Shown: positions 4,762-29,200 of the stretch, piece by piece
Position numbering within the stretch: position 1 is the stretch's first letter
Layout: each line of letters opens with the position of its first letter
Assembly (NCBI GenBank): GCA_977017575.1
Contig: CDRNVI010000145.1
Span: 1 to 64,000, forward strand
Origin: Paramoeba atlantica
Lineage: Eukaryota; Protista; Discosea
Length of the DNA: 64,000 nucleotides
Direction: 5' to 3'
Translations under genes and position numbers: made by a program
Notes under the pieces: generated by a model
What the model was told of the DNA's origin: nothing
The model's input: only the letters and a program-made list of their open reading frames with translations
Databases searched by the model: none

Positions 4762-7395
4762 CTAAAATTTTGGTGAGACTTTTGTTCCTTGTTCTTTTTT
4801 CGGAGTCTCAAATAAAGAAAGAGATCGTTTGTAACAAATTTCCTGAACATATAAAAATAAGAACAGAAGCAAGGAGAAAATAAAAAAAAGAGAAAAAAAC
4901 CTCAGGAACTGAACGTTTTTGGAAAAATCCAAACAACAAAGAATTTTCACATTCAGGCAATGGATAGGGAAATTGTTGATATTGTAAAAACAAGTTGATT
5001 GATTCTCCAATTTTCTGTTTTTTTTTTTTGTTAAATTCTTTTTTCAAGACTAAATTACAAAAAACAAAAAAATGAAAAAGAAACCATGAGATAAGGTAAA
5101 TTAACAAATCCTTCTTCTGTTTTTGGCTGATTTCCATCGTACAGATATCTTAACTCTCTCAACTGTCAAATTTGTTTTAAAACAACAATGAAAAGATCAA
5201 ATCTTGAAAAATAAAAAGAAAATCAAAAAAAAAGAAAGAGAAAAATACCTTTGGAGCAAACCAAGGAAGAAGAGGTGGTTCTGAAGACTGGAACACATTT
5301 TGATAGTTTTTAAAATTCGATTCAGGAGATAAAATTTCATCCAACAATTCAAATCTCTTTTTGTACTATTTTTTTGTTTTCCATAAATCATTAATATTAA
5401 ACAATTTAAATTCACAAACAAAAAAGAGAAAAAAGAAAGGGAGAAAAATCAAAACTCTCAAATTCAAAGATTCCCACAATGGTTTGAAACGTTGAATTGA
5501 AGATTGATTCAATCCACTTATTACAGCTGCACCTCCCTCAAAATTTCGAAGCTTGTAAAAAAAAAAGGAGTCAAATTTAGAGAGAAAAAAGAGAAACAAA
5601 AGAAGAAACAAAAAAGAAGAAAACCTTGAAAAGTTTGGTTGCAAGTTTGATCATAAACATTAAATTCTGAGAACGATTTTCAGACTCACAAAATAGGATT
5701 GATTCAACAACCATTGATGAAATTCGATTGAATATTTCACTCATTGCCATAATATTTGGTGATCGAATATATTTCTCTCTTTTCTATTTGTAAAATAATA
5801 ATAAAAAAAAAGAGTCAAAGAAAGAAAAACATCAAAAAGAAAAGAAAAAAAAAGGAAAAAAAACCTGCCAAAAACTATCATAAAATTCATGAGGTCTTAA
5901 ATCTTTGTATCTTCGAAACATAAAGGAAGTTAACGTTTGTGCAACATGACGACTCGTTCCACAAGAACTCAAACTCATTCTTCCTTTCCAGATCTATTTT
6001 TCAACAAAAGAAAAAAATCAATAAGAATTTCTGAGGAGCTTAGGAACTCAGGATCTCAGAAGCTCAGGATCTCAAAGAGATCCGCCCTCAACCTCAATTC
6101 AAAGGTTTATCCAATCCAATAGAAAAAGATGTGTTTAGGGTTGGTGGGTTGTTTGAAATATTTGAAGGAAAGAAAAAGAAGAGAAAGAAAAAAAGAAGAA
6201 AAAAAGGACCAAAGTTGATTCGAAAGGGGTTGATTCCAAAGAATCCAAAAATTCTTCAATTGCTCTATTTTTGACAACAAGGTCAATACCCAAAGAATGA
6301 AAGAAAGAAAAAAAGAAAAAAGAAAATGAAAGAAAAACTTGGATAAAAGGGGATTAAAAGTTTGATAAAAAGATGTTAAAGTTTTTCTCCAAGAAAGAAC
6401 AATTTGAATAATTTGTTCTTTCTTTTCGTTTTGTTGTTCCTCTCCTTCTTTTGTGATTATCATCTCTTTCATTGTTTCCAAAAGTTTAAACTATTTTTTG
6501 ATTTTGAGTAATTGGGAATCGTTCATGAGTTGTTTTTTTTTGTGAAAGAGAGGGAGAGGAGAGGAGAGGAGAAAAGAGAAAAAAACCTGATCAATATCAA
6601 AAAAAGATTGTTCAAAACCAATAAAAAAAATCTCGATTTTCTCTGGAGATAAACCAACCAAATAATTTATAATCTCCAAATATGAATCACAACGAAATTG
6701 GGATTCGCTTTCTTCCTCTTCAAAACTCGAAAGAGACAACATGGGATATCGAGGAGAAGGACTTGAAAAAATAGATTTCAAATGGGGAGAAAGAGCTATA
6801 AATGGACTTGGAGAAGAACGGGGAGGAGAGGGAGAATAATGGCCAGAGTGGACAGAAGGAGAAAAACGAGGAGATTGATGAACGGAGTTTGGTTTGGATG
6901 GAGGAAAAGAAGAACTGGGAGTATAGGCAGATTGGGCAGAAGAAGGAAAAGGAAAAGAGTGGTGTGAATTTGGGTCAGAAGCAGAACGAGCAGAGGAGAC
7001 CTTTTTTTCTTCTTGTTGGTAAGAAGGTTTTTTAAGGCACATTTTTCTTCGAAAGCTCTTTTGAACTTCCTCTTTGGTCTTAGATTTGGAGGTGGTTTCA
7101 GGGGGTTGTTCATCAAAATCAAAGATTCCTTTTGGTTGAAGAGGTGGTGTTGAAGAAGGCTGTGGAAGAGGTGTAAAATTTTCCATGAGAAGATCTTTCT
7201 CCTGTGTTGTGAAAGAAAGGGTGAGGAAAACAAGAAAAAAGAATCAAACAACAACAAAAATTGAAATACCCAAGAACGTGAAGGTTGGCCAAAAGGAGGA
7301 CATTCATTCTTTCTTTTGGGGGGAGAAGTGTTACAACCAAGAAAATCAGGACGGAAGCGGGAATGGAGAGCCGTTTTTCGATTCAACTTGTCCAT
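4762..7395 (-). CDS. RasGEF (REM + CDC25) gene, copy 2, apparently complete
   Basis: ATG 7395 (MDKLNRK..PSRSW|gt); exons FRCDSYLEIINYL, FNRISSMVVESIL, LRNFEGGAAVISGLNQSSIQRFKPLW, SNFKNYQNVFQSSEPPLLPWFAPK|LRELRYLYDGNQ..GFVNL and EICYKRSLSLFE; stop at 4762-4764. Confidence 0.9.
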
Positions 7396-7740: not shown

Positions 7741-8356
7741 ACAAAAAAGGAAAACAAAACGTGCCTTCTCAAAAAACAAAAACGCTTATTACCAAAAGTT
7801 GAAGCGTTGAATTAGGTTAGAAATTTTTTGGAATGAGGCGTTTTTGTTTTTGCCAAATCAAAAATAGGGTTCAAAAACGTATTAATAGGGTCCAAAAAAA
7901 ATTAGCCCAAATGATTTCCCTAAAATTTTTTTCCCCGCACACTAGAAATGGATGAATGGATAAAATAAAAGGATGGTTTGATAATTGAATGGATGATTTG
8001 AGAGAGATTTTTGGATTCAAGGGGTTGGTTGATTCTTTTTTTTGAAATCTTTTTATTTACAATGACTTTTTATTTTCGACACACCAAAATTTCTTTTTTT
8101 TCGTTCTTTCTTTCGATCAGTTGAGTTGTACTACTTTCAAGCCTCAAACAGATCAATCACAGGAAGACTCGAGATGGTTTACAAGGCCTTTTTAGAAAAA
8201 GGAAAACTAAAAAAGAAAACACGTCTTTCTTCAAGAACAAGAACGTTCAACGGACACTTACAAATAAAGACATTCAAAACAAGACAACCCCTCAGGTTCA
8301 AATCCCAAACAAACAAACATTCTTTCAAAACACTTCAGGTGACAACCCAATACAAT

Positions 8357-11079
8357 CTAACCCTTCTCAAGTAAAGAAAGAGATTGTTTGTAACAAATTT
8401 CCTAAACATTTTCCATCAAAATGATGTGAGTCTCGAAAAAAAAAAAAGGGTATTTTGAAAGAGAAAAAAACCTCAGAAATTGAACGTTTTTGTAAAAATT
8501 TCAACAATAATGTATTGTCAGGAGAATGGGGAAAATCGTACCAAAATTGTTGATATTGTAAAAACGAGTTGATTGATGATCCAATTTTCTGTTTTTGTTA
8601 CTTTTCGTTCAGTCCTTTTTCAAAACGAAATTTACAAAAAACAAAAAAATGAAAAAGAAACCATGAGATAAGGTAAGCTAACAAATCCTTCTTCTGTTTT
8701 TGCTTGATTCCCATCGTACAAATATCTTAACTCTCTCAACTGTTTAAATCATCAGTTGGTTTGAAAACAAAAAGAAAAATAATAGTAAAAAATAAATAAA
8801 AAAAAATAAAAAAAAAAGAGAAAAACACCTTTGGAGCAAACCAAGGAAGAAGAGGTGGTTCTGAAGAATGTAACAAATTTTGATAGTTTTTAAAATTCGA
8901 ATCAGGAGATAACATTTCTTCAAACAACTTAAATCTCTTTTTGTACTATTTTTGTTTTTATCAATATTTACAACAATTTAAATTCACAAACAAAAATAGA
9001 AAAAGAAAAAACAAAACTCTTGAATTCAAAAGTTTCCACAATGGTTTTAAACGTTGAATTGAAGATTGATTCAATCCACTTATTACAGCACCCCATCCCT
9101 CAAAATTTCGAAGCTTGTAAAAAAAAGAGTCAATTGAAAGAAGAGAAAGAAGAGAGAAAGAGAGAAACGAAAAAAGAAACAAAGAAAAAGAGAAAAAAAA
9201 GAAAAAAAGAAGAAAACCTTGAATAATTGAGTTGCAAGTTTGATCATAAGCATTAAATTCTGAGAACGATTTTCAGACTCACAAAATAGAATTGATTCAA
9301 CAACCATTGATGAAATTCGATTGAATATTTCGCTCATTGCCATAATATTTGGAGATCGAATATATTTCTCTTCTTTCTATTTGTCAAAAAAGTTCATTTA
9401 AAAGAGTCAAAGAAAGTAAAACATCATAGAAAAAAAAAGGAAAAAAACCTGCCAAAAACCATCATAAAATTCATGAGATCTTAAATCTTTGTATCGTTGG
9501 AACATCATGGAAGTTAACATTTGTGCAACATGACGACTCGTTCCACAAGAACTCAAACTCATTCTCCCTTTCCAACTCTATTTTTTTCAACAAAAAATTA
9601 AAAAATCTCCAAAAAGAGAATTCAAATAATCCCAGGAAAGACCTCAGGCATAAAAAAAAAAGAGAGAAAAAGATGTGTTTAGGGTTGGTGGGTTGTTTTA
9701 AATATTTGAAGGAAAGAAAAAGAAGAGAAAGAAAAAAAGAAGAAAAAAAGGACCAAAGTTGATTCGAAAGGGGTTGATTCAAAAGAATCCAGAAATTCTT
9801 CAATTGCTCTATTTTTGACAACAAGGTCAATCCAAAGAAAGAAAGAAAGAAAGAAAGAAAAAGAATAGAACTTGGATAAAAGGGGATTAAAAGTTTGATA
9901 AAATGGTGTCAATATTTTCCTCCAAGAAAGAACAATTTGAATAATTTGTTCTTTCTTTTCATTTTGTTGTTCCTCTCCTTCTTTTGTAATTATCATCTCT
10001 TTCATTGTTTCCAAAAGTTTAAACTATTTTTTGATTTGATTAATTGGGAATTGTTCAAAAAAAGAGAAAAGAGAGAGAAAAAGAAAAAGAGAAAGGAAAA
10101 GAAAAGAGAAAAGAGAAAAAAACTTGATCAATATCAAAAAAAGACTGTTCAAAACCAACAAAAAAATCCTTGATTTTCTCTGGAGATAAACCAACCAAAT
10201 AATTGAGAATATCCAAATATGAATCACAACGAAATTGACATTCGCTTTCTTCTTCTTCTTCAAAACTCGAAAGAGAGGGAGATGGAGGAGAAGAACTTTG
10301 ATTAGAAAAAATAGATTTCAAACGAGGAGAAAGAGCTACAAATGGACTTGAAGAAGAAGAAGGAACCACAAATGCACCAGAAGAAGAAGAAGAGAGAGGA
10401 GATCGACGAAAAGGCAATTTAGATGGAGGAGAAGAAGAAGAAGAAGAGGGAGAATCATAATCGGCTTGGACAGAAAAATATGGAGGTGATGGAGAATGAG
10501 AACGAGCAGAATCAGGTGCTTTGGTAAAACGAGGGGATTTACAAAAATATTCAGAAAGAGTAGAAGCAGAAGAGATTTTTTCTTCTTGGAGAGAAGGGAG
10601 TTTTTTCAGTAAAATTTTTTCCCGAAAGCTCTTTTGATCCTCCTCCTCTTTGATCTTTGATTTGATGGTGGTTTCAGGGGGCTGTTCATCAAAATCAAAG
10701 AAGTCTTTTTGTTGAAGAGATAGCGCTGAAGAAAATTGATTAATGTGAAGATCTTTGTCCTGTGTGTGGCGGAAAGAAAGTGTGAGGAAAACAAGAAAAA
10801 GTAATTGAAAAAAAATTGAACAAAAATATCTTACCCAAGAACGAGAAGTTGAGACAAAAGGAGGAATAAGTTCATTCTTTCTGTTGGGTGGAGTTTTACT
10901 CTCAAAAATAGATTTCAACCCTTTCTTTTTTGGGGGGGATTTTGAATCTCTCCTCCGCCCAGAAGGGGCCTAAAAAAAAACAAAAACCATTTTTCGATTT
11001 AGAATTCAAAAAGAGCTGAGAGATTTTGGGAGAACAAACTTACCGAATCAGAAAGTGAAACAGTAGGAAAACGTCTCAT
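8357..11079 (-). CDS. RasGEF (REM + CDC25) gene, copy 3, apparently complete
   Basis: ATG 11079 (MRRFPTVSLSDS|gtaagt), exon APSGRRRDSK..; same conserved RasGEF exons as copy 2; last exon EICYKQSLSLLEKG* with stop at 8357-8359. Confidence 0.9.
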
Positions 11080-11769
11080 TCCTCTCCGAAAACAAAAACC
11101 AAAAAAATGAACGTTCCAACCCCAACGTCTTGACGTTCCCGAAAACTCATCGAAATTTCAATGATATCCCACGAAAATTTATGATGTTTCCGAAATTTTT
11201 TGGCTTTTTGCGTCTGATGTGAAAATTAGTTCAAAAGAGATGAGTTCAAAAAAAATCACAAGGAAGAGGGGGCGTATCCTTCGTTCTTATCTGGTGATTG
11301 GACATCAGTGAACCATCTTGCTTGGGGAGATAGGATCCACACCTCTCGTCCCCCATCTCTGACGGCAACAAACACTGGTGGCATGATGACCTCAAGCAGC
11401 TCGAAGGTAACCGCCCTATCAGCTCCAAACCGACCCCCAGGTTCCGAAAAGAGAGAGGACCTTGCAGAAGACCGACTGAGAGCACCTGAAAAAATTCAAC
11501 ACTGTCAAAAAAGTGTCTCTCAAGTATCCCGAAAACCTCTCTGGTTGAGAACCATAGGATGTCCTAATTTTCAAAAAAATTTGAAGTCGTGACTTTTTTC
11601 TTTGTTTTTTTTTTTGAGTTTTGTGATTTTTCTTGTGGAAGCTGCTGTGTAGAGAAACAAAGAGAAAGTCTTTGACGATTAAATCGCAATCATTTTTAGT
11701 TTTTCTGACTCTACAACTCTTTCACCAAGAACGTGAACAACTCCTTCCTCCTCCCCCTCCTTATTATCC

Positions 11770-12738
11770 ATGGAAGACTCTCCCATTCAAAAAAAGAAAA
11801 GAAAGAAGAGGTCAGGACTTCTCAGACTGGTACGATATCTAAAAACGAATACAAAGCCAACATGGGAGCCCAACCCAAATTGTCTTCGTGTTAATAGCTC
11901 AGCTTATTTACAAGTTGAGCGACAGGGAAAGTGGTGTTATCGGGCCCATTTTCTCAAGGAAGTATTTACTCGCGATGAAATGAAGGATTTTCAACAAGCT
12001 CTGTTGGCCTGTCGTGAGACACATTGGGATCATTCAAATGACCCAACAAGAGGGGAGAGAGCCTTTATGTTTTGTGGTGAATGGAGGCAACGAGGTCACT
12101 CCACGATCCACCCTGCTGGAATTGGGGGGCGTTATGAAGCTGAAGTGAAGCCAGTTCTGCAACCTTGTCTTGAAAACCTTGGGCGAACACTTTCTCAGAG
12201 GGTTCAAAGATATCGACCAGATATTTGGAATTGTTTAGAGGAAAACAACTTGCTGGAACGAAATTTTGGAATCTTTCACTTATTTATGTGTCCTGCTGGA
12301 AGATCAATTATGCATTACGACAGGAATGATTTTATTTCTGTTTTGGTTATGATCCATTTGGATGATGACCAACAAGGTGGGCTTGAGATTGGGGGTATTG
12401 ATCTTGCTTTTAATTTAAAAATTGGGGATGTTCTCATTTTGGACACTGACCAACTGTGTCATGGAACAGAAGAAGGTTATGACGATAGTTTGGAAGATGT
12501 TTTGTCTGTTTCTGCAACCGATAGATTGGTTGGCCTTTTTATTATCCACCGATCTTATTTACGACTTTTTGGTGTTGATCCAAACACTCTTTGCCGGGAG
12601 AAAATTGAAGCTCTGACCATCCCTGTACCTCCTCCACTGAAAAAGAGAGAGAAAGTGGGGGAACAAACCCCCTCTTGTCCTTCTTATTGTAACAAACTCT
12701 CCTCCTCCTCAACAACCTCTCCTTTCTCCAAAAAATAA
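11770..12738 (+). CDS. TET/JBP-type 2OG-Fe(II) dioxygenase, 322 aa, single exon, N-terminal basic NLS-like stretch
   Basis: HxD (HYDRND, H at 12313), GGL-x-GDVLILD strand, distal His (LCHGT, 12460) and 2OG-binding Arg (DRLVGLF, 12523); KKKRKKR near the N-terminus; in-frame stop at 11734-11736 upstream of the ATG. Confidence 0.8.
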   Translation: MEDSPIQKKKRKKRSGLLRLVRYLKTNTKPTWEPNPNCLRVNSSAYLQVERQGKWCYRAHFLKEVFTRDEMKDFQQALLACRETHWDHSNDPTRGERAFMFCGEWRQRGHSTIHPAGIGGRYEAEVKPVLQPCLENLGRTLSQRVQRYRPDIWNCLEENNLLERNFGIFHLFMCPAGRSIMHYDRNDFISVLVMIHLDDDQQGGLEIGGIDLAFNLKIGDVLILDTDQLCHGTEEGYDDSLEDVLSVSATDRLVGLFIIHRSYLRLFGVDPNTLCREKIEALTIPVPPPLKKREKVGEQTPSCPSYCNKLSSSSTTSPFSKK

Positions 12739-12792
12739 AAATAAAATAAAAAGAGGAAAAAAATGGTTTGGGTTGTGTTTGTTTCTGTGGTT

Positions 12793-13580
12793 TTATTGGC
12801 TCTGATTTTTCTCAGCTGCAAGTGAAACAATAAGATTGGAGACTTCTGAACGTTCTTTGTTTTTGGTGAACCATGATTGAGTCAGAAAACTATCTGGTTT
12901 TTCCTCCTGGCTCAAATGCAACAGAAATTCCTCAACATATTTCATGACAAAGACTCCACAATCCACATCATTTTCCTGTTGGGGTACAATGGGTTTCACC
13001 ACTTCCAATCTTTCCAATCTCCCCAATCTCTTGGGAAGAAAGTTTGACTGAAAAAGCTTCTTGATTTTTTCAATAACAGTGTCGACACGGTGTGACAAAA
13101 ACCCTCTCATTGAATCAAGGTGCCACATTTTTTGTTCTGGGATACTAAGAACGAATAAAGACCAATGGGAATCCTTAATGTTGAAAGGAAGAAACAAATA
13201 GTCGATTTTATCATAGTCCAAGAACCAGCGTGAAAGAATTGAATAATCGTGTTCCAAATTCTCCAACTTGGTGAGAAAGAATGTAGAGAGACAGAGAAAT
13301 GAGAAGGCAGTTGTTTGTTTGTTCTACAAAATAAAATTAAAAAAAAAATTAAAAAAAAAACCCTTTAAAAAAAAAAACCCTTTAAAAAGTAAAAAAATGA
13401 AAAAACAAATACTTTCATCAAATACTTCAAGTAGAAATCAATTAGTGAATCATTCAAATAAGCGTTAGATACCAAACTATTGAGATCCTTTGGAAAAATT
13501 TCAACAGAAGACCTATCGAGATTAGGGTACAGTAAAATTCTTTTTTGTGGGTCAGAGGATAAAAACTTCTCCGTTTCAGG
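12793..13580 (-). other. Ulp1/SENP (peptidase C48) deSUMOylase-like domain
   Basis: LLYP..DLNSL..AYLNDSLIDFYLKYL, STFFLTKL, LPFNIKDSHWSL (His), HLDSM (Asp), PQQENDVDCGVFV (Gln, Cys); triad intact. Confidence 0.92.
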
Positions 13581-16500
13581 CTATTTTATTTGTGGTGAGC
13601 AGATAACAGAAAAAAGAGAAGAGAAAAATGAGAAACCAACCAAAAAAGAATACGATTTTTTAAAGTTCAGTTGTTCTGAATATTTACGCAGCCCTGTTGT
13701 GAAATTCCTTTTCTCTCCCTCTCTCTGCCTTTCCTTTTTTTCTCTTACTTTTTTCTCTTTTTCTCTCTTGATTTTCTCTCTTTTTTTTTTCTCTCTCTCT
13801 CCCTCCCTCTCTCTCTCCCTCTCTTTCCTCTCTCTTTCCCTTTCTCTTTCCTTCTCCTCTTCTCTCTCACTTTCCCAAGTTGTTTTACTTTCCTCCCTCT
13901 TCCTCTTCCTCTTTCCTTCCTCCTCCTTCCCTTTCTCTCTCTCCTTCTCCTTCTCCTTCTCTTCTTTCTTCACCTTGTTCTCCCTCTTCTTCCCTTTCCC
14001 CTCCCTTCTTACAATTTTTTTCTCAACATAAAAATCCACCAAAAATTGAGAAAGGGATAATTCTGGCAGTACCCTCTTTAAAATTCTCTCGTCAGGTTTC
14101 CTGGCATCAGATGATGTGGCTTGGCGATATTCTTCATTTGGTGCATTTTGGACCAGGTGAATTTTGAGTTTCGCATTTTCGGTTTTGTATTTTTCATAAA
14201 GAAATTCAACAATTTTCAGTTGAACCCGTGCATCAAGTAAAGCATCATGGCATTTTCCCCGTAATGATCTATCAATCGAAAATGTTGTACAAATATGGTC
14301 GACACTCCATTTTGGGTAACGATCCAAAGAGCCTTTGTCTCGTCCAATCTCGAAATATAACTCCTTGCTATCAAAAAATCGTACAAATGAAGGAACCTGA
14401 ATCCCATAACGCTGACAGTCATTCTTCAATGTTGGTTCATCGCAACCCTTACCATTATGAGCAATCATCATCACAAGTGGTTTTTCTTTTGTCCGGAGAA
14501 GATTTAAAAATCGAAAAAATCGAGGAAAGACTTGATCAAATGTATCCCTTTTTCGGAGAAACTGATGTGACAATCCGTGAATGTTGTAAGCCTGGGAAGT
14601 TATTGGAATCTCCTCCCCTATTGTTTTTGGTATTGTGAGTTGTATTTCTAATTAAAAAGAAAAAAGAGAAAAAAGGAGAAGAGAGAAGAGAGAGGAGAAG
14701 AAAAAATACCTGGATTAATTGCTTCATGAAATTCAAGTTTTTTTTTGGATGACTCTCCAAATTTCCAAGCAACAAGGGCAAGAGAAACAAATGATTGCTT
14801 ATTACTTCCCTTCGTTTTACCTGTTGTCTCACCATCCCAAACAACAAACCCACCAAAACAGTTATCATCCTTTTTACCAACTACACTTTTACAAAATTCC
14901 TCCACACTTTCACAAGATGCATCCTCAATTTCAACCACACTTTCACAAGATCTGTCCTCAATTTCAACCACTTGTCCTTCGAGGCTTGAGAAGTCTGGTT
15001 CATTTGGAGGAGTAAGAGTGACATTCGAATTCTTTGATGTTTCAGTTGGAAATGGATGTTCACCACTATGTCTTTTAACAAGATGGTTATTTAAATAGCC
15101 AAGAAATCGGTACTGTTAATAATTATTGTATTAGAAAAAAAAAAAGAAAAAAATTCTTGAATTTTCCTTCTTGAAAAAAAAAAAAAAAATCCAAACTTGC
15201 TTTGGGCAATCTTCCCATGGACATGGATAAAGTTGTGATGGGAAAGAATCAGATGTTTGAAGCGTTTGAACAATTCGATGTGATTCATCACCTCCAACAA
15301 CTAAGCAGGTCATTTGTCGAGTTGTCAATCTTTTTCGGGTGCAACGGTATGCATCAGCAATCATTTTAGCAAGAGCAACTTGCTCTGGAGTTGCAGATGG
15401 AAACAGAGAAGAAGAAGATTTTTTTCTTTTCTCCTTAGTATAAGAAATCAACGAAGAAAGCTCAGAGAAATCAAAGATAACTCCTGTTTGGTCATTATAC
15501 TTCAAAGCAGATTTCTTGCCAAGAGTGCGTTTGGGCATGGCATACAACCGATTTGGGGAGAATTTTTTGATCAATTCAATCCATCCATGTGACTCTAAAA
15601 AAGCATACTCATAAAGAGATGGGTATCGGATCTGTAGAAAAAGACAAAAAAACAAAAGAAAACACAAAGAAAAATGATATAAGATGAAAGAAAAATGACC
15701 AAAGGATAGAGGAGGTAAACAAAAAGAGAGGAAGAGGGAAAAAAATATTGGAGAAAAGAGCATAAAAGAAAAGAAGGTGTAAAAGAGAAAAAAGAAGAAA
15801 AGAAAATAATAAATAAACAAAAACCTTGCTTCGAATCACAGAAAAGTGATTTTCACACAAATTGGTTCCTAACATTGATGTTCTTCGATGGGTCATAAAA
15901 TACACATCTTCTTTCTTCAAAAAGGTGACTAAGTTGTTTAAAGTCTGAAGAGTCTATTGAAAAAAAAAAAAAAGAGATAAATAACATTTTTGCAAAAACA
16001 ATTTTTGGGAAAACAATTAGACCACAAAAGTTGAAAAGAGAGTGTGTGGTGTGTCATGTAATTCATTTAATTAAATAATAAATAATAAATCAATTGAAAG
16101 AAAATAAAATACCTGGTTAAAGAACTCTGTGGTTGTAAACTGTCTTTTTGATTGGGCCTGGTAGGTCTCGAGTCGTTTTATCAATCCTGTTGCTGTCTCA
16201 ATCTTACAATCAATGTCCCAAGAGTTGTTTGAAAAAAGATCATGAAGACAAAGCAACATTTCAAGATACTTGACAAGAGCAAAGACTTTCTTTTTTTCCC
16301 TTTCATTCGCAGTGTTCTGACCAAATTCCTTGATTTTGGTGGCAGCACGGAGCAAATTCATCACAGGGACAAGATTTTGCTTATCTGATGGACATATATC
16401 ATCTAACTTCAAAGCAAGTTGTAATTCAACGGAATTGGACCACCAGTTCGAGAGGGTTTTCATCGAAAATTTCACTCCATCAATTTGAATCAGTCGATTG

Positions 16501-18750
16501 AGTAAGTTATTTCGACCATTCTTGACCAGATGAACATAATCAAAAAAATGTAAAACATCCTTCATTTTCGTTGAATAATCAAGAGAACCTGAAAATCCAT
16601 CAGAGCTGGTCCACATAACAACGATTTCCTTTTCCTTCATTTCATTTGAGATCTTTGTAAACACTTCAAACAGCTGGGTCCCTGTCAGCGATATTGTTGG
16701 AATAAATGTAACTGGGAATGCAATGGTACCACAATTCGAAATAAAAAAAATTTGACACACCTATTAATACTTTTGTTTTAAAACAAAAGAAAAAGAAAAA
16801 GAGAGAAACACACAAACAACAACAACTAGTGTTTTAGTTTTAGTTTTTTGTTTGTGTATATTTTTAAGGATTTATGAAAACAATTATTTGGAAAACAAAA
16901 CAAAAAAAACCTTCTTTGCAAGTTCTGGTGTATAGTCAACCAATAGATTTGGATCCAATTCGCAATCTTTTAAATATTTGTCAACAAGACCCACAAACCG
17001 TCCTGATGTACGTAAATATACAAGACCAGATCTGATCTCCATTTCATCACAAATGAGCCCACCTCCTTGAAGATCATGGCCATCGATTCGTTGTTTTTTG
17101 AGCATTTGAACAAGGATCTGAATCCGTTGGGTAACTTGAGCACCTTTATCATCAAACCATTGATAAGGCTCAACAGGAGGAATGAGTCGACGGAGAGTTG
17201 AATCAGCTGGAATACAGAGGTTTGTTGTTTTAAGATCATAATGAAAATCCCCTTTTTTTCCCTCGCATCCTTTACCACGCAAAAGATTAATCACTCGCTT
17301 ACCCCCATAAAACTGAAGTGTTGCAAAGAAATTTAAAATCTCTTGGTCCCATCGATTTCCATTTGGAGTATTGTTCAAAAGCACCTCAAGTTGGGTTTGA
17401 ATAAATTTCCCATTGAAGGAGTTCACCCATTCATCACCATACTGTTCAATGACTTGATGTACAAGAAGAGAGAGAGGATGACAAGAGGCTGGAGGCTGTT
17501 CTTGGTTCTTCTATTGGAACACAAGCAAAATAAAGTCAGTTAAAAAATCTTTACTTTTTTATCATACAGGATGATATTTTTTTAAAAAGATCTCAAAAAA
17601 AAAAGACAAACACATACCATTAAATATTCTTGATTTGCATTCCACTTTTTCAAGTATTGGATTGCTTGGTGACATGAGGGACAAAAGCGACCTGCAGCTG
17701 AAGAACTACCTTCTTGACGAACCTTCACAGAATCAAAAGAAAAAAAATGTAAATATTTCTTTTCCTATCCACCACACACACTATCCCCATTCCATCATCA
17801 TCATCACACAAATCATCCCTCATCAATAAATATTTTATCAATAAAAAGAAATAGATAAAAAAAGAGAACCCGTTCACAAAATGAAAAAAAAAGTTTTCCA
17901 GCTTGAAGAACTCCAATTACTCTGGACCCAGACTTCGATTTCTCCGCTATATATTTCCGCTTCACAACTCCATCAGAATCTGCAATTCTTTGTGCATTCT
18001 GAACAACTGTCGCAGTATCAGAGATTCCAGGGCACAAATCATGGTGATGATCATCAATAAACTCAAAAAAGGGGGAAAAGAATAATGGCTTCTCCTCCTC
18101 CTTTGTAATCATCATTGGTTCAGGACTCAACTCACTCCTGTCATGGGCAAGCCCCACCTTCTGATGTTTCTTCCTTCTTCTAAAAAAGAAAAATGGGGGT
18201 AAGAAAAATATTTCATTTTTCCCCTCAAATACACTTTTTTTTCTCAAAAAACACTCTCAGTGAACACTAAAAAAGAAAAGAACACCACTTACCTTCTGGG
18301 TGGTGGCAACCCAACTTCAAACAAAGTTGTTTGCTTCCAAGTTCTTTTTAGAAGATGATGACAAAATGATTGGATAAAGGGATCCAATCTTGGTTTGATT
18401 CCAGTGGAATGTTTCAGAGGGTATTTTTTCCAGTTCCTCACCCTTTTGACATCAAAGAGTTTAGATATCAATGGTGGGATATAAGTGGAAAATTTTGCGC
18501 TCTCAATTGATCGAATCTCTGGGCAACATTGAGAACATTTCGCGACAATCTCATTAAATGAGATCGCATCATACTCCTTCTCATCCTCACTCAACTTGTC
18601 AAAATGATGGTAAAGGGTCAGTGCAAGGTATTGGTAAACAACAAGAAACTCACGTTTCTTTGGGAGTCCATCAGGGATTAAATCCATTTTTCTCTCTTGG
18701 AAACACTGTGAAAAAGGAGAGGGAAGTTCAGTCAACTGAGAATAGTGGCA
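12793..18750 (-). CDS. Spliced polyprotein (>=1601 aa): N-terminal region, P-element-type transposase, C2H2 finger, DEDDh exonuclease, KE-rich linker, Ulp1/SENP protease; start codon unresolved upstream of 18750
   Basis: Exons 18750-18293, 18179-17870, 17764-17618, 17510-16911, 16760-16113, 15953-15825, 15631-15197, 15112-14710, 14617-13641, 13580-13413, 13323-12793. All introns are GT..AG, all phases are compatible, total 4806 nt with no internal stop. Confidence 0.85.
14200..14850 (-). other. DEDDh 3'-5' exonuclease domain
   Basis: ExoI VVWDGETTG (D ~14835); INPG|EEIPITSQAYNIHGL across the splice; ExoII IAHNGKGCD; ExoIII HDALLDA. Confidence 0.88.
15065..15225 (-). other. C2H2 zinc finger split by an intron
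   Basis: CPWEDCPKQ|YRFLGYLNNHLVKRH (C-x4-C-x12-H-x4-H), formed only by the 15197/15112 splice. Confidence 0.75.
15500..17400 (-). other. P-element/THAP9/Galileo-type transposase catalytic region
   Basis: FYGGKRVINLLR..PADSTLRR; ICDEMEIRSGLVY (D ~17047); TSSDG (D ~16600); FDYVHLVKNGRNNL; DKQNLVPV; LGTNLCENHFSVIR (E ~15853). Order and spacing fit the P-element DD-E fold. Confidence 0.85.
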
Positions 18751-19187
18751 CTAATTTTAAGAAAAAAAAGAAAGGGAAACCAAAAACTACAGAAGATCCA
18801 ATTTCAAGTGTGTTTTCACTGCAGAACTCCACCAGTGTTTGGAGGACAATGAAAGAGGGGAGAGGGTGGGGGTTGTTTCAGGGTGGAACCACACTCTGAG
18901 TGTTGATGAGATCTTTTGGTCTGGTGGAGAGTAGTCAAGAGTTTGTAGATGCTGAAAATTGGAATTTTTGCAAGTAATTTTAATTATTTGTTCACGATAT
19001 TTGTTCCTTCTCAAAGATTTGCAGGGAACAGAAACTCTCAAGGAATTTCTGATCACAACAGCACAAGCAGACCAAACTTTCAAGAACAAATGAATCACCA
19101 CAGAATCTCCAAAATCTTGACCACAAACCAATTTTCCTATCTCTCACTTGTTGTATGGTGCCAACCCTTTCGCAAACCCACAGCAGA

Positions 19188-19255
19188 TTCGCCCAGTTTC
19201 GCCCAGTTTCGCCCAGTTTCGCCCAGTTTCGCCCAGTTTCGCCCAGTTTCGCCCA
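19188..19255. repeat. 10-bp tandem repeat (GCCCAGTTTC)x6 plus partial unit
   Basis: Six perfect units at 19191-19250 followed by gccca; GC-rich in AT-rich context, upstream of the transposase gene. Confidence 0.95.
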
Positions 19256-19623
19256 ATGCCACACCAACGAAAGTTCGTTCTTTTTCGTGACCTTCGCTCA
19301 AATGAATCCCAATATTTCACTGAGATTGAAAGAATCCTATGATAATCAAAACGTCAAAATCACATTCCTGAATTGGATGTCAAAGAAACTCTTGGTCATT
19401 TGGCTTGAGTTAGAACCCCGTGAAAAATTTAGCCAAAATGGTTGCCCTAAATTTTTTTTCCTTTCCTTTCCTCCCACAAAGAAATGGATTGAAGAAATGG
19501 GTTCGATTGAGATTTTGAATCAAGGTGAATCTTTTTGAAATCTTTGTTTGTCAATGATGACATTTTATTTTACTCCTTGATCCACTCAAAATGAAAATAA
19601 ATTGATTTCTTTCTTTTGATCGC

Positions 19624-22335
19624 TCAACTCATCTCAAATAAAGAAAGAGATTGTTTGTAACAAATTTCCTAAACATTAAAAACTATGTGAGTTTTGAAAA
19701 AGAGAGAAAGAAAAGAAAATATTTGAAGAGAAAAAAACCTCAGGAACTGAACGTTTTCGTAAAAATATCAACAACAAAGAATTGTCAGAAGGATGGGGAA
19801 AATCATATCGAAATGATTGATATTGCAAAAATGATTTGATTGATTCTCCAATTTTCTGTTTTTGTTACTTTTTATTAATTCTTTTTTTCAAGACGGAATA
19901 AAACAATAAAAAATAAATGAAAAAATGAAAAAGAAACCATGAGATAAGGTAAATTAACAAATCCTTCTTCTGTTTTTGATTGATTCGCATCATATAAATA
20001 TCTTAACTCTCTCAACTGTTCAAATCATCAGTTAGTTTGAAAATAATAAAAAAAAATAAAAAAAAAATTAAAAAAAAAGAAAGAGAAAAATACCTTTGGA
20101 GCAAACCAAGGAAGAAGAGGTGGTTCTGAAGACTGGAACACATTTTGATAGTTTTTAAAATTCGATTCAGGAGATAAAATTTCATCAAACAATTCAAATC
20201 TCTTTTTGTACTATTTTTGTTTTCATCAATATTTACAACAATTTAAATTCACAAACAAAAAAATAGAAATAGAAAAAAATAAAACTCTTGAATTCAAAAG
20301 TTTCCACAATGGTTTTAAACGTTTAATTGAATATTGATTCAATCCACTTATTACAGCTGCACCTCCCTCAAAATTTCGAAGCTGTCAAAAAAGAGTCCAA
20401 AATATTAAGAAATGAGAGAGAGAGAGAAAGAAAAGAGAAATAAAAGAAGAGAGAAGAGGAGAAGAACCTTTAACAATTGAGTTGCAAGTTTGATCATAAA
20501 CATTAAATTCTGAGAACGAGTTTCAGATTCACAAAATAGGATTGATTCAACAACCATTGATGAAATTCGATTGAATATTTCACTCATTTCCTTAATATTT
20601 GGTGATCGAATATATTTCTCTTCTTTCTACATGTTTAACAGAGTCAAAGAAAGAAAAACATCAAAAGGAAAAGAAAAAAAAGGAAAAAAACCTGCCAAAA
20701 ACCATCATAAAATTCATGAGGTCTTAAATCTTTGTATCTTCGAAACATAAAGGAAGTTAACATTTGTGCAATATAGTTACTCGTTCCACAAGAACTCAAA
20801 CTCATTCTTTTCCAAATCTATTTTTTTCGACAATTAGAATTTCTGAGGAGCTTAGGAACTCAGGATCTCAGGAACTCAGGATCTCAAAGAGATCCGCCCT
20901 CACCCTCAATTCAAAGGTTTATCCAATCCAATAGAAAAAGATGTGTTTCGGGTTGGTGGGTTGTTTTAAATATTTGAAGGAAAGAAAAAGAAAAAAAGAA
21001 GAAAAAAAAGACCAAAGTTGATTCGAAAGGGGTTGATTCCAAAGAATCCAAAAATTCTTCAATTGCTCTATTTTTGACAAGAAGTCAATACCAAAGAATG
21101 AAAGAAAGAAAAAAAGAAAAAAGAAAATGAAAGAAAAACTTGGATAAAAGGGGATTAAAAGTTTGATAAAATGGTGTTAATATTCTCCTCCAAGAAAGAA
21201 CAATTTGAATAATTTGTTCTTTCTTTTCATTTTGTTGTTCCTCTCCTTCTTTTGTAATAATCATCTCTTTCATTGTTTCCAAAAGTTTAAACTATTTTTT
21301 GATTTTGAGTAAATTGGAATCGTTCATTTGTTGTTTTTTTTTGTTAAAGAGAGGGAGAGGAGAGGAGAGGAGAAAAGAGAGAAAAACCTGATCAATATCA
21401 AAAGATTGTTCAAAACCAATAAAAAAAATCTCGATTTTCTCTGGAGATAAACCAACCAAATAATTGATAATATCCAAATAAGAATCACAACGTAATTGAT
21501 CGCCTGAATCAGAAAAAGAGAGAAGAGAGGGAGAAGAAAGAGGAGGAGGAGAAGGAGGAGGAGAATCTTGAGTTGAAAAAAGAGATTTCCAACGAGGAGA
21601 AAGAGCTAGAAGTGGACTTCCAGAAGAAGGAAAATCTGATTGGGAGGAAGGATAAGAGAAAGGAGATAGGGACAGAAAAGAGAGGCGTGAACTTGAAGAA
21701 CGAGGCGATGTGCAAGATGAAGGAGAAGGAGTGAGAGCAGGAAGTGATTGGAGAGAGGGAGGAGATTTGGGTTGAGGAGAATGAGAACGAGGGCGGATCA
21801 CACCCTCTTCTTGTTGTGATGGGAGAGAAGAGATTTTTTTCATGAAAAGTTTTGCGTGGGAGCTCTTTCGGTTCTCCTCTTTGGACTTTGCTTTGGTTAT
21901 TCTGGGGTTCCCCTGGTCAAAATCTTCGTCTTTTAGTTGGAGGTACTTTGGAGGAGGAAAAGGTTCAGTGGTTGTTGTCTGTGAAAGAGGGATGAGATCA
22001 AAAAGAAAGAAAGAAAAAAAAAAAGTGGTTCATTTTTACCCAAGAAGGCGAAGATGGGACAGAGACAGAACGTTCCTTTCGTCCGGCTTTCTTTCTTTCG
22101 TCCTTTCTTTCATGGAGAGTTTTACTGCGAACTTTCTTTCTCTCTTTCTTCTTTCTTTGGGGGGGTTCTTTTCCCTCAAGGTCCGACTTCCCAAAATCCA
22201 GTTCCTAAAGATGAGAAAAAGAAAAACAAGATGAATTTTGAGGCAGAGATCAAACTGAAGGGAAAAAAAAACTCTCACCAAAGAAACAGAAAGTGGGCTG
22301 GATGGGAGAGTGTTTTGTCTCGTTCGTTTTTCCAT
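19624..22335 (-). CDS. RasGEF (REM + CDC25) gene, copy 4, apparently complete
   Basis: ATG 22335 (MEKRTRQNTL..SVSL|gt), exons ELDFGK..SPSW| and TTTTEPF..LRCDSYLDIINYL; conserved CDC25 exons; last exon EICYKQSLSLFEMS* with stop at 19624-19626. Confidence 0.88.
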
Positions 22336-23272: not shown

Positions 23273-26200
23273 ATGAATTGTGTTTTTCTTTGTCAGGAGA
23301 GGAGTTCTTCTTCTTCTTCTGGCTTTGCTTTTGATGGTGGTGGAGGTCAAAAACGAAGATTGTTTTTTTTGACCTTTTTTGTGGTTGTTCTTCTCATTTC
23401 GCAAGGAGAGGGAGGTATTTTGACCATACAAGATAACAATCAAGATCAAGCTGCGCCAACCGCAGTCTTCTATTATCGAATTGAATCGAACGAGTCAATT
23501 CCCCAAGCTATCCTCAATCTTCCAACTGGAAGTTGGTCTTTTCCAACGGAAGATGAACCTCTTTGTGTCTCCGATGATCCTGCTTCATGTCCCATCACAG
23601 AGATTTCAATCACCAATTGGTTTGTTTTTTTGTTTTTTGTTTTTTTTTGTTTTTTTGTTTTTTTGTTTTGTTTTTTTTTGTTTTTTTTTGTTTTTTTTGT
23701 TTTTTATTTCTTATTTTCTTGGTCTCCCAATTTCTGTTTTTTTTTACCTTTGAACAAAAGCTTTTCTGTCCACCAAAATATTTCGTGTTAATGTTTCAAA
23801 AAGGGATGATGTTGAACAAGAGTATTATCACCAATCGATTGAATTTATCACTCCATACGAAATGATCAATTTTTTGGGTTATGGTAAGTTTTTCTTTTGT
23901 GAAAAATAGAATTTTTGTTGGGTTCTCAAAACAATTAATCTTCCTTTTTCCACAGTCCAATTTACTGGTGATCTCAGGAGTGTTAAAAATGACATTGGTG
24001 AGGATTTTTGATTACCAATACCTACTTTAGTCTCTTGATCATTTTTTTGATGTTTTTTTTTTAGAATCTCTTCGTTTAATGTATCGTAGTGGAACTGAAA
24101 CAATCGGAGGGAATGAGTATGAAGGAAATGAAATTTCAGCAGGACCCGTCTATGTTACCGAAGATGGAATCCTTCGAAACAGTTGGGCTGTTACAACCGA
24201 TCAAAGTTACGATTTCGATGAACCAGTTGAAGATTGTTCGACTTCTGCTCTTTGTCCCCTGAATACTCCAATCCCTTGTCTTCTGAATAAGGATTGTTCT
24301 GCGAACGAGTGTCCGTTGTTACCTCAATGGTGGGAAGAAGCCACTTTTTTCGATGAGTATGGGTGTTATGCTCGACAAGGAGCTGATTACAAAACTGACC
24401 CAGCCAGAGACGAAGCAGTGGTTGAAGCAATCACAGGAAGAAAACAATGTTGTTTGCCAGAGCTTCCCAATCAATTCCCAACTGAAGAGTATTATCCTTA
24501 CAATAGTTATGGAGATACAAAGAAAGAAATCCCTTGTTCTTTGTTACCTTATTGTTCTGATGATGTATGGTCTGAAGATCCTTTTCATACAACGATGCCT
24601 GATGGAATGGATTATACATACTTTTATTTGGATAATGATGGTCGTATTTCGAATCTTGATCCATCAGATATTGTTGTTGAAGATGGAAGTGACTTTGTTC
24701 CTGACTTAAGAAGGAAGAAGTCTGCGATGTGTGATCCTGATATCTGGCCTCCTCGCCCTCGAAACGGACCTCGTTTGGATTTCTTCATTTCTGGGTATCG
24801 ATCACTTACTGAAGAAGATTTACCTTTTCCAATCCAATGGGGAGGTACTGGTTCAAATACTATCGATGGTCTGAAACAAACAATGCAAATTGGAACAATT
24901 GGATTCAAAAACTATGTTTCTGATGATGATTGGAGTGTGAAAGCTCTTGGTTTGAATCATGGTGGGACTGGAGGAACAACAGCTGAAGAAGCACGCCAAA
25001 ACCTCGTGTTGGGTCGATTAGCTCGTTTTGATACAATCGATGATTCCAATTGGAATGGTCGTGCTCTTGGTTTGTTGAATGGTGGGACTGGAAGTCGAGA
25101 ACAAGAAACTGCTCGTCGAAATTTAGGTCTTGGTCTCTCTTCTGTTGAAGGAATTGATTATGAAATTGAATTCAATCAACAAATTAGTGGTATTCAAGTT
25201 ACTGTTGATGCTCTTGGTGCTCTTGCTTTTGAAGATACCATTCGACCTGCACTTTGGAGTGGAGAGACCCTTCCTCTTGTTGATGGTGGTGTTGATGCCA
25301 GTAATGCGATGGATGCTCGTTACAATCTCCTTCTTGGTCAAATGGCTCTGTATGATTATATTGGAGATAATAATTGGATGGGACCTCCTCTTTCTGTTGC
25401 GAATGGAGGAACTGGTTCAACTTCTGTTGAAGAGATTGGTGATACTCTTGAACTTGGAGATTTAGCTTATCTTGATTATGCAACAGATTTTGTGTGGGGT
25501 GGGGATCCTTTAAGTATTGAAAATGGTGGAGTTGAAGCTACCAATGTTATTGATTCTCGTTTCAATCTTCTTCTTGGAGCTCTTGCGACTTTTGATTATG
25601 TTGGAAATGAACAATGGTTAGGACCTCCTCTTTCCATTGAAAATGGAGGAACTGGTGCGAACACTCTCGAACAAGCTGTTGATAATTTCGAACTTGGTCA
25701 AATGGCTTTTGTGGATGGAGTTGCTGATTATCTTTGGTCTGGTGATTCTCTCACAATGGTCAATGGGGGTCTTGAAGCAAACAATGCGATTGATTCTCGT
25801 TTCAATCTTCTTCTTGGTCATTTATCAACTCTCGATTATGTTGGGAATGAACAATGGCTTGGATCTCCTCTTTCAATCGAAAATGGAGGAACTGGAGCCA
25901 ACACTTTCGAACAAGTTGTTGATAACTTTGAATTGGGAGAACTTGCCTTTTTGGATGTTGTTGGAGATTCATTATGGAGTGGTGATTCTCTTAGTATTGA
26001 AAATGGTGGGTTCGATGCATCCAATGTGATTGATGCTCGTTACAATCTTCTTCTTGGTTATTTATCAACTCTCGATGCTGTTGGAAATGACCAATGGCTT
26101 GGATCTCCTCTTTCGATTGAAAATGGAGGAACTGGAGCCAATACTTTTGAAGAAGCTGTTGATAATTTCGAGTTGGGAGAACTTGCCTTTTTGGATGTTG

Positions 26201-29200
26201 TTAGAGATTCATTGTGGAGTGGTGATTCTCTTAGTATCGAAAATGGAGGACTTGAAGCATCCAATGTGATTGATTCTCGTTACAACCTCCTTCTTGGTGC
26301 TTTATCAACTCTCGATTATGTTGGAAACGAACAATGGCTTGGATCTCCTCTTTCCATTGAAAATGGAGGAACTGGAGCCAATACTTTCGAACAAGTTGTT
26401 GACAATTTCGAGTTGGGAGAACTTGCCTTCTTAGACGTTGTTAGAGATTCTTTATGGAGTGGTGATTCTCTTAGTATTGAACATGGAGGACTTGAAGCAT
26501 CCAATGTGATTGATTCTCGTTACAATCTTCTTCTTGGTCATTTATCAACTCTCGATTATGTTGGAAACGAACAATGGCTTGGATCTCCTCTTTCAATCGA
26601 AAATGGAGGAACTGGAGCAAATACTTTCGAACAAGTTGTTGATAACTTTGAGTTGGGAGAACTTGCCTTTTTGGATGTTATTGGAGATTCATTATGGAGT
26701 GGTGATTCTCTTGGTATTGAGAATGGTGGTTTTGAAGCATCCAATGTGATTGATGCTCGTTACAATCTTCTTCTTGGTGCTTTGTCAACCCTCGATTATG
26801 TTGGAAACGAACAATGGCTTGGATCTCCTCTTTCGATTGAAAACGGAGGAACTGGAGCCAATACTTTCGAACAAGTTGTTGATAATTTCGAGTTAGGAGA
26901 ACTTGCCTTTTTGGATGTTATTGGGGACTCTTTATGGAGTGGTGATTCTCTTGGTCTTGAAAATGGAGGACTTGAAGCATCCAATGTGATTGATGCTCGT
27001 TACAATCTTCTTCTTGGTGCTTTATCAACTCTCGATTATGTTGGAAATGAACAATGGCTTGGATCTCCTCTTTCGATTGAAAATGGAGGAACTGGAGCAA
27101 ATACTTTCGAACAAGTTGTTGATAACTTTGAGTTGGGAGAACTTGCCTTTTTGGATGTTGTTAGAGATTCATTGTGGAGTGGTGATTCTCTTGGTATTGA
27201 AAATGGTGGGTTTGAAGCATCAAATGTGATTGATGCTCGTTACAATCTTCTTCTTGGTGCTTTGTCAACCCTCGATTATGTTGGAAATGAACAATGGCTT
27301 GGATCTCCTCTTTCAATCGAAAACGGAGGAACTGGAGCAAATACTTTTGAACAAGTTGTTGATAATTTTGAGTTGGGAGAACTTGCCTTTTTGGATGTTA
27401 TTGGGGACTCTTTATGGAGTGGTGATTCTCTTAGTATTGAAAATGGTGGGTTTGAAGCATCCAACGTGATTGATGCTCGATATAATCTTCTTCTTGGTGC
27501 TTTATCAACTCTCGATTACGTTGGAAATGAACAATGGCTTGGATCTCCTCTTTCCATCGAAAATGGAGGAACTGGAGCCAATACTTTCGAACAAGTTGTT
27601 GATAACTTTGAGTTGGGAGAACTTGCCTTTTTGGATGTTATTGGAGATTCTTTATGGAGTGGTGACCCTTTAACTTTCGAAAATGGAGGACTTGAAGCAA
27701 ACAATGTGATTGATTCTCGTTACAATCTTCTTCTTGGTGCTTTATCAACTCTCGATTATGTTGGGAATGAACAATGGCTTGGATCTCCTCTTTCAATCGA
27801 AAATGGAGGAACTGGAGCCAATACTTTCGAACAAGTTGTTGATAACTTTGAGTTGGGAGAACTTGCCTTTTTAGATGTTGTTGGAGATTCATTATGGAGT
27901 GGTGACTCTCTTAGTATTGAAAATGGTGGGTTTGAAGCATCCAATGTGATTGATGCTCGTTACAATCTTCTTCTTGGTTATTTATCAACTCTTGATTATG
28001 TTGGAAATGACCAATGGCTTGGATCTCCTCTTTCGATTGAAAATGGAGGAACTGGAGCAAATACTTTTGAAGAAGCTGTTGATAATTTTGAGTTGGGAGA
28101 ACTTGCCTTCTTTGACGTTGTTAGAGATTCATTGTGGAGTGGTGATTCTCTTAGTATCGAAAATGGTGGGTTTGAAGCATCTAATGTGATTGATGCTCGT
28201 TACAATTTGAATCTTGGATATCTCTCAACCTACGATTATTTCGGAGATAACCTTTGGATTGGTCCTCCTCTTTCAGTGGACAATGGAGGAACTGGAGTGA
28301 CCACATATTATGATCTCACAGATCGACTTGAACTTGGAGATTTGGCTTACTTAGATTATGTGATGGATTTCTATTATGGTGGTGATCCACTCTCAATCGA
28401 AAATGGTGGTTTTGAAGCTTCCAATGTTCTTGATGCTCGTTACAATTTGAATCTTGGATATCTTGCAACATATGATTATCTTGGAGATAACCTTTGGATT
28501 GGTCCTCCTTTGGGAGTCAACAATGGAGGAACTGGAGTGACCTCTTATTATGATTTGACTGATGAACTTGAACTTGGAGAGTTGGCTTACTTAGATTATG
28601 TGATGGATTATTATTACGGTGGTGATCCACTCTCAATCGAAAATGGTGGTTTTGAAGCTTCCAATGTTCTTGATGCTCGTTACAATTTGAATCTTGGATA
28701 TCTTGCAACATACGATTATCTTGGAGATAACCTTTGGATTGGTCCTCCTTTGGGTGTTGATAATGGAGGAACTGGAGTGACCTCTTATTATGATTTGACC
28801 GATGAACTTGAACTTGGAGAGTTGGCTTACATGGATTATGTGATGGATTATTATTATGGTGGTGATCCACTCTCAATCGAAAACGGTGGGTTTGAAGCTT
28901 CTAATGTTCTTGATGCTCGATACAATTTGAATCTTGGATATCTCTCAACCTTTGATTACCTTGGGGATAACCTTTGGATCGGTCCTCCATTGAGTGTTAA
29001 TAATGGAGGAACTGGAGTGACAACCTATTATGATTTGACTGATGCTCTTGAGCTTGGAGATTTAGCTTATTTAGATTATGTAATGGATTTCTATTATGGT
29101 GGTGAACCACTCTCAATCGAAAATGGGGGTTTTGAAGCTTCCAACATTCTCGATGCTCGTTACAACCTTAATCTTGGATATCTCTCGACCTTTGATTACC

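Follow-up and report, generated by a model that had tools for sequence, protein, structure and literature searches.

A divergent TET/JBP-family dioxygenase gene in a recently copied block that may be a mobile element

Mobile elements that carry a TET/JBP gene are thought to use the enzyme against methylation-based silencing. Does a short intronless open reading frame, found near one end of a duplicated block, encode such an enzyme, on what would it act, and does it travel with the DNA around it? The window, by which we mean the whole stretch of 64,000 nucleotides analysed here, is part of contig ctg3937l (L010; 77.7 kb) of the ENA assembly ERZ24900291. Using relatives, sequence profiles, a predicted fold and a comparison of repeat copies, we arrive at an overall reading that we consider probable, although well short of secure: an active-looking, divergent TET/JBP enzyme lies in a recently copied block and would have an anti-silencing role. 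The gene and its main residues are as follows.

11770–12738, plus strand: divergent TET/JBP-family 2OG/Fe(II) dioxygenase, an intact intronless ORF of 322 aa (from relatives, profiles and fold)
11791–11811, plus strand: KKKRKKR, residues 8–14, an NLS-like basic cluster (read directly)
12313–12330, plus strand: H182-Y-D184-R-N-D187, the iron-binding HxD with Asp at HxD+3 (from the 30- and 46-sequence alignments)
12460–12549, plus strand: distal iron ligand H231 (12460–12462), R252 (12523–12525) and H260 at R+8 (from the alignments)

The ORF runs uninterrupted for 322 codons from an ATG at 11770 to a TAA at 12736–12738 on the plus strand. Five relatives obtained by word search (E 3e-94 to 5e-42) are colinear with it from end to end, and the alignment with them has no gap that would suggest an intron; it is therefore not a chance ORF, and it has no intron, as an earlier sequence-only reading of this locus had claimed. 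That reading also placed the gene in an intron-dense genome, which stands locally, where two adjacent genes consist of stop-to-stop segments with GT...AG between them.

Three alignments were used, one of six sequences (A1), one of 30 close members (A3) and one of a wider set of 46 (A2). G103, H182, D184, D187, G219, D220, H231 and R252 are invariant in all 30 close members; in the wider set H182, D184, H231 and R252 occur in 46/46 and D187 in 45/46. The iron triad (HxD...H) that marks 2OG/Fe(II) oxygenases, together with their downstream Arg, is thus present as H182, D184, H231 and R252, the last being the likely binder of the 2OG carboxylate. The catalytic signature proposed earlier holds as a 2OG/Fe(II) pattern at H182/D184/D187/H231/R252, although its motif letters are not confirmed as they had been written. 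At least five Lys or Arg within seven residues, N-terminal of the core, are found in 24 of the 30 family members, and most of the six without such a cluster have short N-termini. The basic cluster is therefore a family feature rather than mere A-rich drift; of the nuclear localization signal that had been read into it, the cluster itself stands, and it may act in nuclear import or else in DNA binding.

To which family does the protein belong? Searched on its own, the window protein matched no Pfam family, Tet_JBP (PF12851; gathering threshold 34.9 bits) included, and no PDB sequence, and its close relatives reach 14–19 bits on Tet_JBP, below the 34.9 cut-off. With a limit of E 0.001 the six-sequence profile reached 128 representative clusters, 42 of them at E up to 1e-30. 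Two of the remoter proteins found by this profile, P0098 (E 7e-10) and P0112 (E 1e-6), score above the Tet_JBP threshold, with 45.7 and 43.1 bits, and hhalign of the 30 close members against P0098 gave 99.2% probability and E 8e-20 over 230 columns. The best match of the wider 46-sequence profile among PDB sequences was NgTet1 (E 6e-9). The source names that we noticed for family members were "hypothetical protein" throughout, and the locus adds a TET/JBP subfamily, of 128 representative clusters, that Pfam misses.

The predicted fold leads to the same family. An AlphaFold model built from 30 sequences (pLDDT 86.9, pTM 0.83) was compared with the PDB by Foldseek, and ranks 1–25 were held exclusively by TET/JBP enzymes (NgTet1, Coprinopsis CcTet, human TET2 and Chlamydomonas CMD1), with E 1.5e-9 to 3.4e-7 and TMq 0.45–0.53. 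AlkB homologues and other 2OG oxygenases form the class that follows, which begins at E 4.7e-6 with TMq of about 0.35, an E value some 3000-fold weaker. Against viral models (BFVD), the top named matches were JBP1/TET oxygenase domain proteins, down to E 7e-13, with a similar gap. A first model, from six sequences (pLDDT 62), had given a mixture of PolD, FTO, CcTet and PHD2 in Foldseek and is superseded. The sequence-only reading had allowed that the best structural match might be a 2OG oxygenase family that does not act on nucleic acids, which is not the case at any of these 25 PDB ranks. Identity to every characterised enzyme is 10–13%. With profile–profile and fold comparison in agreement, the assignment to TET/JBP that had been proposed is well supported, although Pfam has no match for the window protein itself. 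To our knowledge, TET/JBP enzymes are the only ones known to actively oxidise the methyl group of 5mC, and that the window enzyme writes or erases a base modification may reasonably be expected from its family membership.

The closest comparison is with NgTet1 (PDB 4LT5, 5CG8/9), the top Foldseek match (E 1.5e-9, TMt 0.60), which like the window protein is a compact single-domain enzyme (about 300 aa), lacks the Cys-rich insert found in animal TETs and has the H-x-D-x-x-D motif. The two are about 11% identical, Pfam Tet_JBP misses the window protein, and in the latter, unlike in NgTet1, an additional acidic stretch separates the distal His from the Arg; moreover, the window gene lies in a duplicated block, whereas NgTet1 is a plain host gene. 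CcTet (PDB 7VPN, 8JKK) occupies Foldseek ranks 2–9. TET2 and CMD1 have the fold class of the window protein (E 2e-8 to 3e-7) and the HxD...H triad; unlike the window protein, TET2 has an Asn at HxD+3, a Cys-rich domain and a large insert, and CMD1 is about 870 aa long and uses vitamin C. The invariant R252 argues for ordinary use of 2OG by the window protein, in contrast to CMD1. Trypanosomatid JBP1 and JBP2 share the Asp at HxD+3 (PMC11804724), while their structures are not among the top Foldseek PDB matches and the window protein has neither a J-DNA-binding nor a SNF2 domain.

The dioxygenase gene is part of a larger unit, the recognisable features of which are listed here.

11556–19422, no strand assigned: duplicated 7,867-bp block, a candidate mobile element, holding the dioxygenase and its neighbour genes (from the second copy)
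12793–13580, minus strand: Ulp1/SUMO-type cysteine protease (Peptidase_C48), two segments with a GT...AG gap (PF02902)
13584–15115, minus strand: DEDDh-type exonuclease (RNase_T), two abutting segments, then a Lys/Glu-rich low-complexity stretch (PF00929)
15612–17510, minus strand: candidate P-element/THAP9-type (TNP-like RNase H) transposase exons 16887–17510, 16074–16760 and 15612–15953 (PF21787)
17816–18750, minus strand: further open segments with no recognisable domain (Pfam and reading)

The second copy, at L011:659–8521 (contig ctg2445l of ERZ24900291), aligns to window positions 19422–11556 at 99.2% identity over 7,883 columns. Both ends of the block are sharp, and the flanks of the two copies are unrelated on each side. 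The dioxygenase gene starts 214 bp inside the left end, is the outermost gene and reads inward. When the ends and flanks of the two copies were compared, neither terminal inverted nor direct repeats, nor LTRs or target site duplications, were seen at the block ends, and in a test for inverted repeats on the terminal 60, 200 and 500 nt the alignment scores lay within those of shuffles. A third copy is not on record. Three substitutions and one frameshift mark the dioxygenase gene of the second copy, whose other exons, where compared, are intact, so that the gene was not needed for the persistence of that copy. A unit of about 2.5 kb with Ser/Pro-rich minus-strand ORFs occurs in three direct copies (84–88%) at 4806–7325, 8359–10893 and 19626–21499, and the block sits between the second and the third. 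A search for an empty site between these repeats gave a 39-nt match only, of 7896–7934 to 19423–19461, abutting the right end of the block, and nothing convincing for the left end; the 39-nt stretch at 7896–7934 lies in the spacer before the second repeat copy.

All recognisable genes of the block other than the dioxygenase are on the minus strand; Pfam and PDB were searched with their single exons, and GT...AG was read at the gaps inspected. PF02902 matches 12796–13323 with E 2e-22 and 80.5 bits (cut-off 20.7), and the N-terminal segment of the protease at 13368–13580 was assigned by reading alone. This gene is tail-to-tail with the dioxygenase gene, 54 bp separating the stop codons. PF00929 matches 13584–14651 with E 3.4e-7 and 31.4 bits (cut-off 24), and an Asp-x-Glu motif was read in the segment 14651–15115; possibly the exonuclease and Ulp1 exons form one gene, encoding a fusion. 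Upstream of the exonuclease exons, a C2H2 zinc finger-like reading, made by eye, is split over 15134–15170 and 15060–15115 on the minus strand. The transposase assignment starts from PF21787 (TNP-like_RNaseH_N), matched over profile positions 10–56 with E 4e-4 and 20.8–21.1 bits, below the 24.6 cut-off; a GT...AG gap separates the first two segments. Members of the P-element/THAP9 superfamily have an RNase H-like transposase with a GTP-binding insertion, a THAP domain, 31-bp terminal inverted repeats and an 8-bp target site duplication. Searched one by one, the candidate exons matched neither the GBD, RNaseH_C or THAP families of Pfam nor any PDB entry, and a word search with them gave one non-self homologue (38% identity over 144 aa), the rest being the two block copies. 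An Rfam scan of the window returned nothing, and a sigma-70 promoter scan was discarded as irrelevant to a eukaryotic gene.

Is the dioxygenase then the cargo of a mobile element? Its closest paralogue is P0001 (56% identity), likewise from ERZ24900291, which heads a cluster of nine proteins that are near-identical and lie on nine contigs. Four loci of this cluster were compared and have a block in common at 96–98% identity, which makes at least four sequenced copies. The left end of this paralogous element is identical in three of the four loci, the right end is common to the two loci that reach it, and both ends occur together in L002 only, at 10079–19474, giving a length of 9.4 kb. Its termini, CACTTTGGG and CCCAAAGTG, form CAC...GTG in inverted orientation and are common to independent copies. 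Elements of the EnSpm/CACTA type have 5'-CAC...GTG-3' ends, a short target site duplication and a DDE transposase; around the single complete copy no matching 3-bp target site duplication was seen, and no transposase domain was recognised in the element. As in the window block, the dioxygenase gene is outermost and reads inward, and in a tblastx comparison of the 7.87-kb block with the 9.4-kb element it is all that the two have in common. Among four element copies, one paralogue has two internal stops and the others have a dN/dS of about 1, as is expected of element copies decaying after insertion. Near the window block the terminal motif of the 9.4-kb element occurs 20 times against 16.7 expected, not beyond chance, and megablast of the window and L011 against the contigs with the paralogous element found no repeats in common.

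Some further observations concern the surroundings of this paralogue and of more distant relatives. The 9.4-kb element in L002 has retroelement-rich flanks (L002:1–10078 and 19475–21512), and at L003:9573–10362 the right end of another copy lies about 420 bp upstream of adjacent tRNA-Ile(AAU) and tRNA-Lys(UUU) genes. Differences between element copies are nearly all transitions (93/102 and 142/148), many in TpC and CpG contexts, which suggests cytosine deamination or hypermutation of repeats. Relatives from metagenomes adjoin long intron-free ORFs at L007:142–3255 (1,037 aa) and L005:3894–6302 (802 aa); these neighbour ORFs gave no Pfam match and no similarity to the window or to the paralogous element. 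A search of JGI metagenome contigs with the six-sequence alignment yielded no confirmed locus.

A duplicated block need not be a mobile element. The TET/JBP enzyme could be the product of a host gene that sits beside a decayed transposase in a segmental or assembly-level duplicate, and block ends without inverted repeats, target site duplications or LTRs, the presence of only two copies on record, the sub-threshold transposase match and the abundance of tandem and dispersed duplications in the window would all suit such an origin. However, the ends are sharp with both flanks unrelated, the recognisable domains of the block (Ulp1, exonuclease and TNP-like) are typical of genes of mobile elements rather than of housekeeping genes, the nearest paralogue is clearly within the multi-copy CAC...GTG element, and the dioxygenase is the sole module common to both blocks, as exchanged cargo would be. 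We regard a segmental or assembly-level duplicate as a serious alternative, if not a likely one. The earlier description of the gene as transposon cargo retains a sharply bounded block found twice at 99.2% identity between unrelated flanks, but it has behind it a transposase below threshold and no inverted repeat, target site duplication or LTR; on balance we lean, if only slightly, towards the dioxygenase being the cargo of a mobile element.

For such cargo there is a precedent. In fungi, TET/JBP genes are carried by eleven lineages of DNA transposons, with gene transfers between carriers (Kojima 2025, PMC12730594), and the link between fungal TET/JBP genes and DNA transposons goes back to Iyer et al. 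2014, as cited in PMC12730594. The carriers include KDZ, hAT, Harbinger, IS3EU, EnSpm, ESTA, Plavaka and Helitron (Iyer et al. 2014; Kojima 2025, PMC12730594), and escape from methylation-based silencing has been proposed as the role of the transposon-borne enzymes (PMC12730594). Like the fungal cases, the locus described here has a small TET/JBP gene with its own start codon beside transposase genes, here candidate ones, in a repeated element, and TET/JBP genes occur in unrelated elements of one assembly; the CAC...GTG ends of the 9.4-kb element are typical of EnSpm-type elements. Unlike the fungal carriers, the window block is without inverted repeats or target site duplications, its sole transposase hint is of the P-element type, a superfamily absent from Kojima's list (PMC12730594), and it co-carries Ulp1 and exonuclease domains, neither of which is mentioned in PMC12730594. 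It is possible that the window subfamily is one of Kojima's divergent types (PU, AG, PE; PMC12730594). As the concept has already been published for fungi, the locus adds to it only incrementally, unless its host or its carrier turns out to be new.

How might the enzyme work for the block? A double-stranded beta-helix enzyme with Fe(II) held by H182, D184 and H231 and 2-oxoglutarate held by R252 would oxidise the C5-methyl group of a flipped-out pyrimidine in DNA, either 5mC or thymine, and the conserved N-terminal basic cluster would bring the protein to the nucleus or help it to hold DNA. The block appears to have been copied recently to a second place in the assembly, and the enzyme would then oxidise the cytosine methylation that otherwise silences it, as has been proposed for fungal DNA transposons that carry TET.

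Two residues bear on the choice between these substrates. H260 lies eight residues past R252, which we take to be the spacing of TET2 R1896/H1904, and by motif spacing it would correspond to the pyrimidine-edge His, NgTet1 H297 or TET2 H1904; the column is His in just 18 of the 30 close members and Gln in seven. By motif spacing and published assignments (PMC4678852, PMC11804724), D187 at HxD+3 would correspond to D234 of NgTet1 and N1387 of TET2, the residues in contact with the exocyclic N4 of 5mC (PMC4678852). The thymine hydroxylase TbJBP1 also has an Asp at HxD+3, and some activity on thymine is known for NgTet1, which has this Asp (PMC11804724, PMC4678852). Since the Asp is common to NgTet1, which acts on 5mC, and to TbJBP1, which acts on thymine, D187 does not decide between them, and from the residues examined, which do not separate the two, the substrate would be either 5mC or thymine.

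The DNA itself points to methylated cytosine as one substrate at hand. The CpG observed/expected ratio is 0.46 in the 7.87-kb block, 0.22 in the paralogous 9.4-kb element, 0.18 in the tandem array of 3.5-kb units within the window, and 0.02 in the retroelement-rich flanks of the 9.4-kb element (6 CpG in 12.1 kb). The two copies of the 7.87-kb block differ by 25 substitutions, 9 of which are CpG transitions. These footprints fit cytosine methylation acting on repeats, so that a TET-type enzyme would have something to act on. Could the enzyme nevertheless be a thymine hydroxylase, JBP-like and forming 5-hydroxymethyluracil, or the maker of another modified base rather than a 5mC oxidase? This would agree with the Asp at HxD+3 of TbJBP1 and the measurable thymine activity of NgTet1, which has that Asp (PMC11804724, PMC4678852), with the Gln that replaces the R+8 His in 7/30 members, with the 5hmU produced by a dinoflagellate TET/JBP homologue, (PMC11572971), and with an identity of only 10–13% to every characterised enzyme. 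We think it unlikely, as the top structural matches act on 5mC, the CpG depletion and the excess of CpG transitions point to cytosine methylation as the substrate available in this assembly, and neither a glycosyltransferase gene nor any other gene for further modification of the base is present in the block. An anti-silencing role directed at 5mC is, for its part, a reasonable but tentative proposal, to which we would give somewhat less than even weight. The dioxygenase is the sole module that two unrelated repeated blocks of one assembly have in common, and repeats of this assembly have strong footprints of CpG decay; the locus is thereby a natural setting in which to ask whether TET-carrying repeats escape the methylation that hits their neighbours.

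A bolder account combines the unusual features of the locus. The block at 11556–19422 might be a kind of mobile element not described before, in an organism outside the fungal lineages known for TET-carrying transposons and without inverted repeats or target site duplications, made up of a P-element-like transposase, a zinc-finger/exonuclease/Ulp1 gene and a deeply divergent TET/JBP enzyme, whose modification may be other than 5mC oxidation. As a whole, we hold this account to be improbable.

Is the gene still in use? The public gene call on the dioxygenase covers its last 223 codons only. Many public calls on L010, the contig of the window, read through in-frame TGA in the style of genetic code 4, and in-frame TGA is absent from the conserved ORFs of the window; the read-through looks like a gene-caller artefact on low-GC DNA, which also explains the shortened call. 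An unexpressed relic, still open by chance of its recency, would be in keeping with that partial call and with the frameshift that the gene has already suffered in the sister copy of the block. However, all seven invariant family residues are intact in the window ORF, which is colinear with relatives down to 27% identity and stays open for 322 codons in DNA of 42% GC, and we consider a relic very unlikely.

One part of the profile evidence was ambiguous. Against PDB sequences, the 30-sequence profile placed gamma-butyrobetaine dioxygenase (E 0.005, over 30 residues) before NgTet1 (E 0.05), and some family members have matches to Pfam WelO5 and TauD, one of them above threshold (P0025, 30.7 bits). 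That the window protein is a 2OG oxygenase of small molecules or proteins (TauD/BBOX-, WelO5- or prolyl-hydroxylase-like) rather than of nucleic acids, as the best PDB sequence match of the close-family profile and these Pfam matches might suggest, is highly improbable, since such matches span just 30–37 residues or so around the distal His, the N-terminal basic cluster is conserved, and the full-length profile–profile and fold comparisons choose TET/JBP by a clear gap.

Finally, two further repeats occupy much of the window. An uninterrupted ORF of 4,406 codons at 24079–37299 on the plus strand consists largely of about 46 tandem units of 240 bp (80 aa), 80–90% alike and rich in turns of the Asn-Gly-Gly-Thr-Gly type; it matched no Pfam family. 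From 37425 to 64000 there follow about 7.5 tandem copies of a unit of about 3.5 kb, 82–96% alike, the minus strand of which carries short ankyrin-like exons, and this tandem array has a TpG observed/expected ratio of 1.35 beside its CpG ratio of 0.18.
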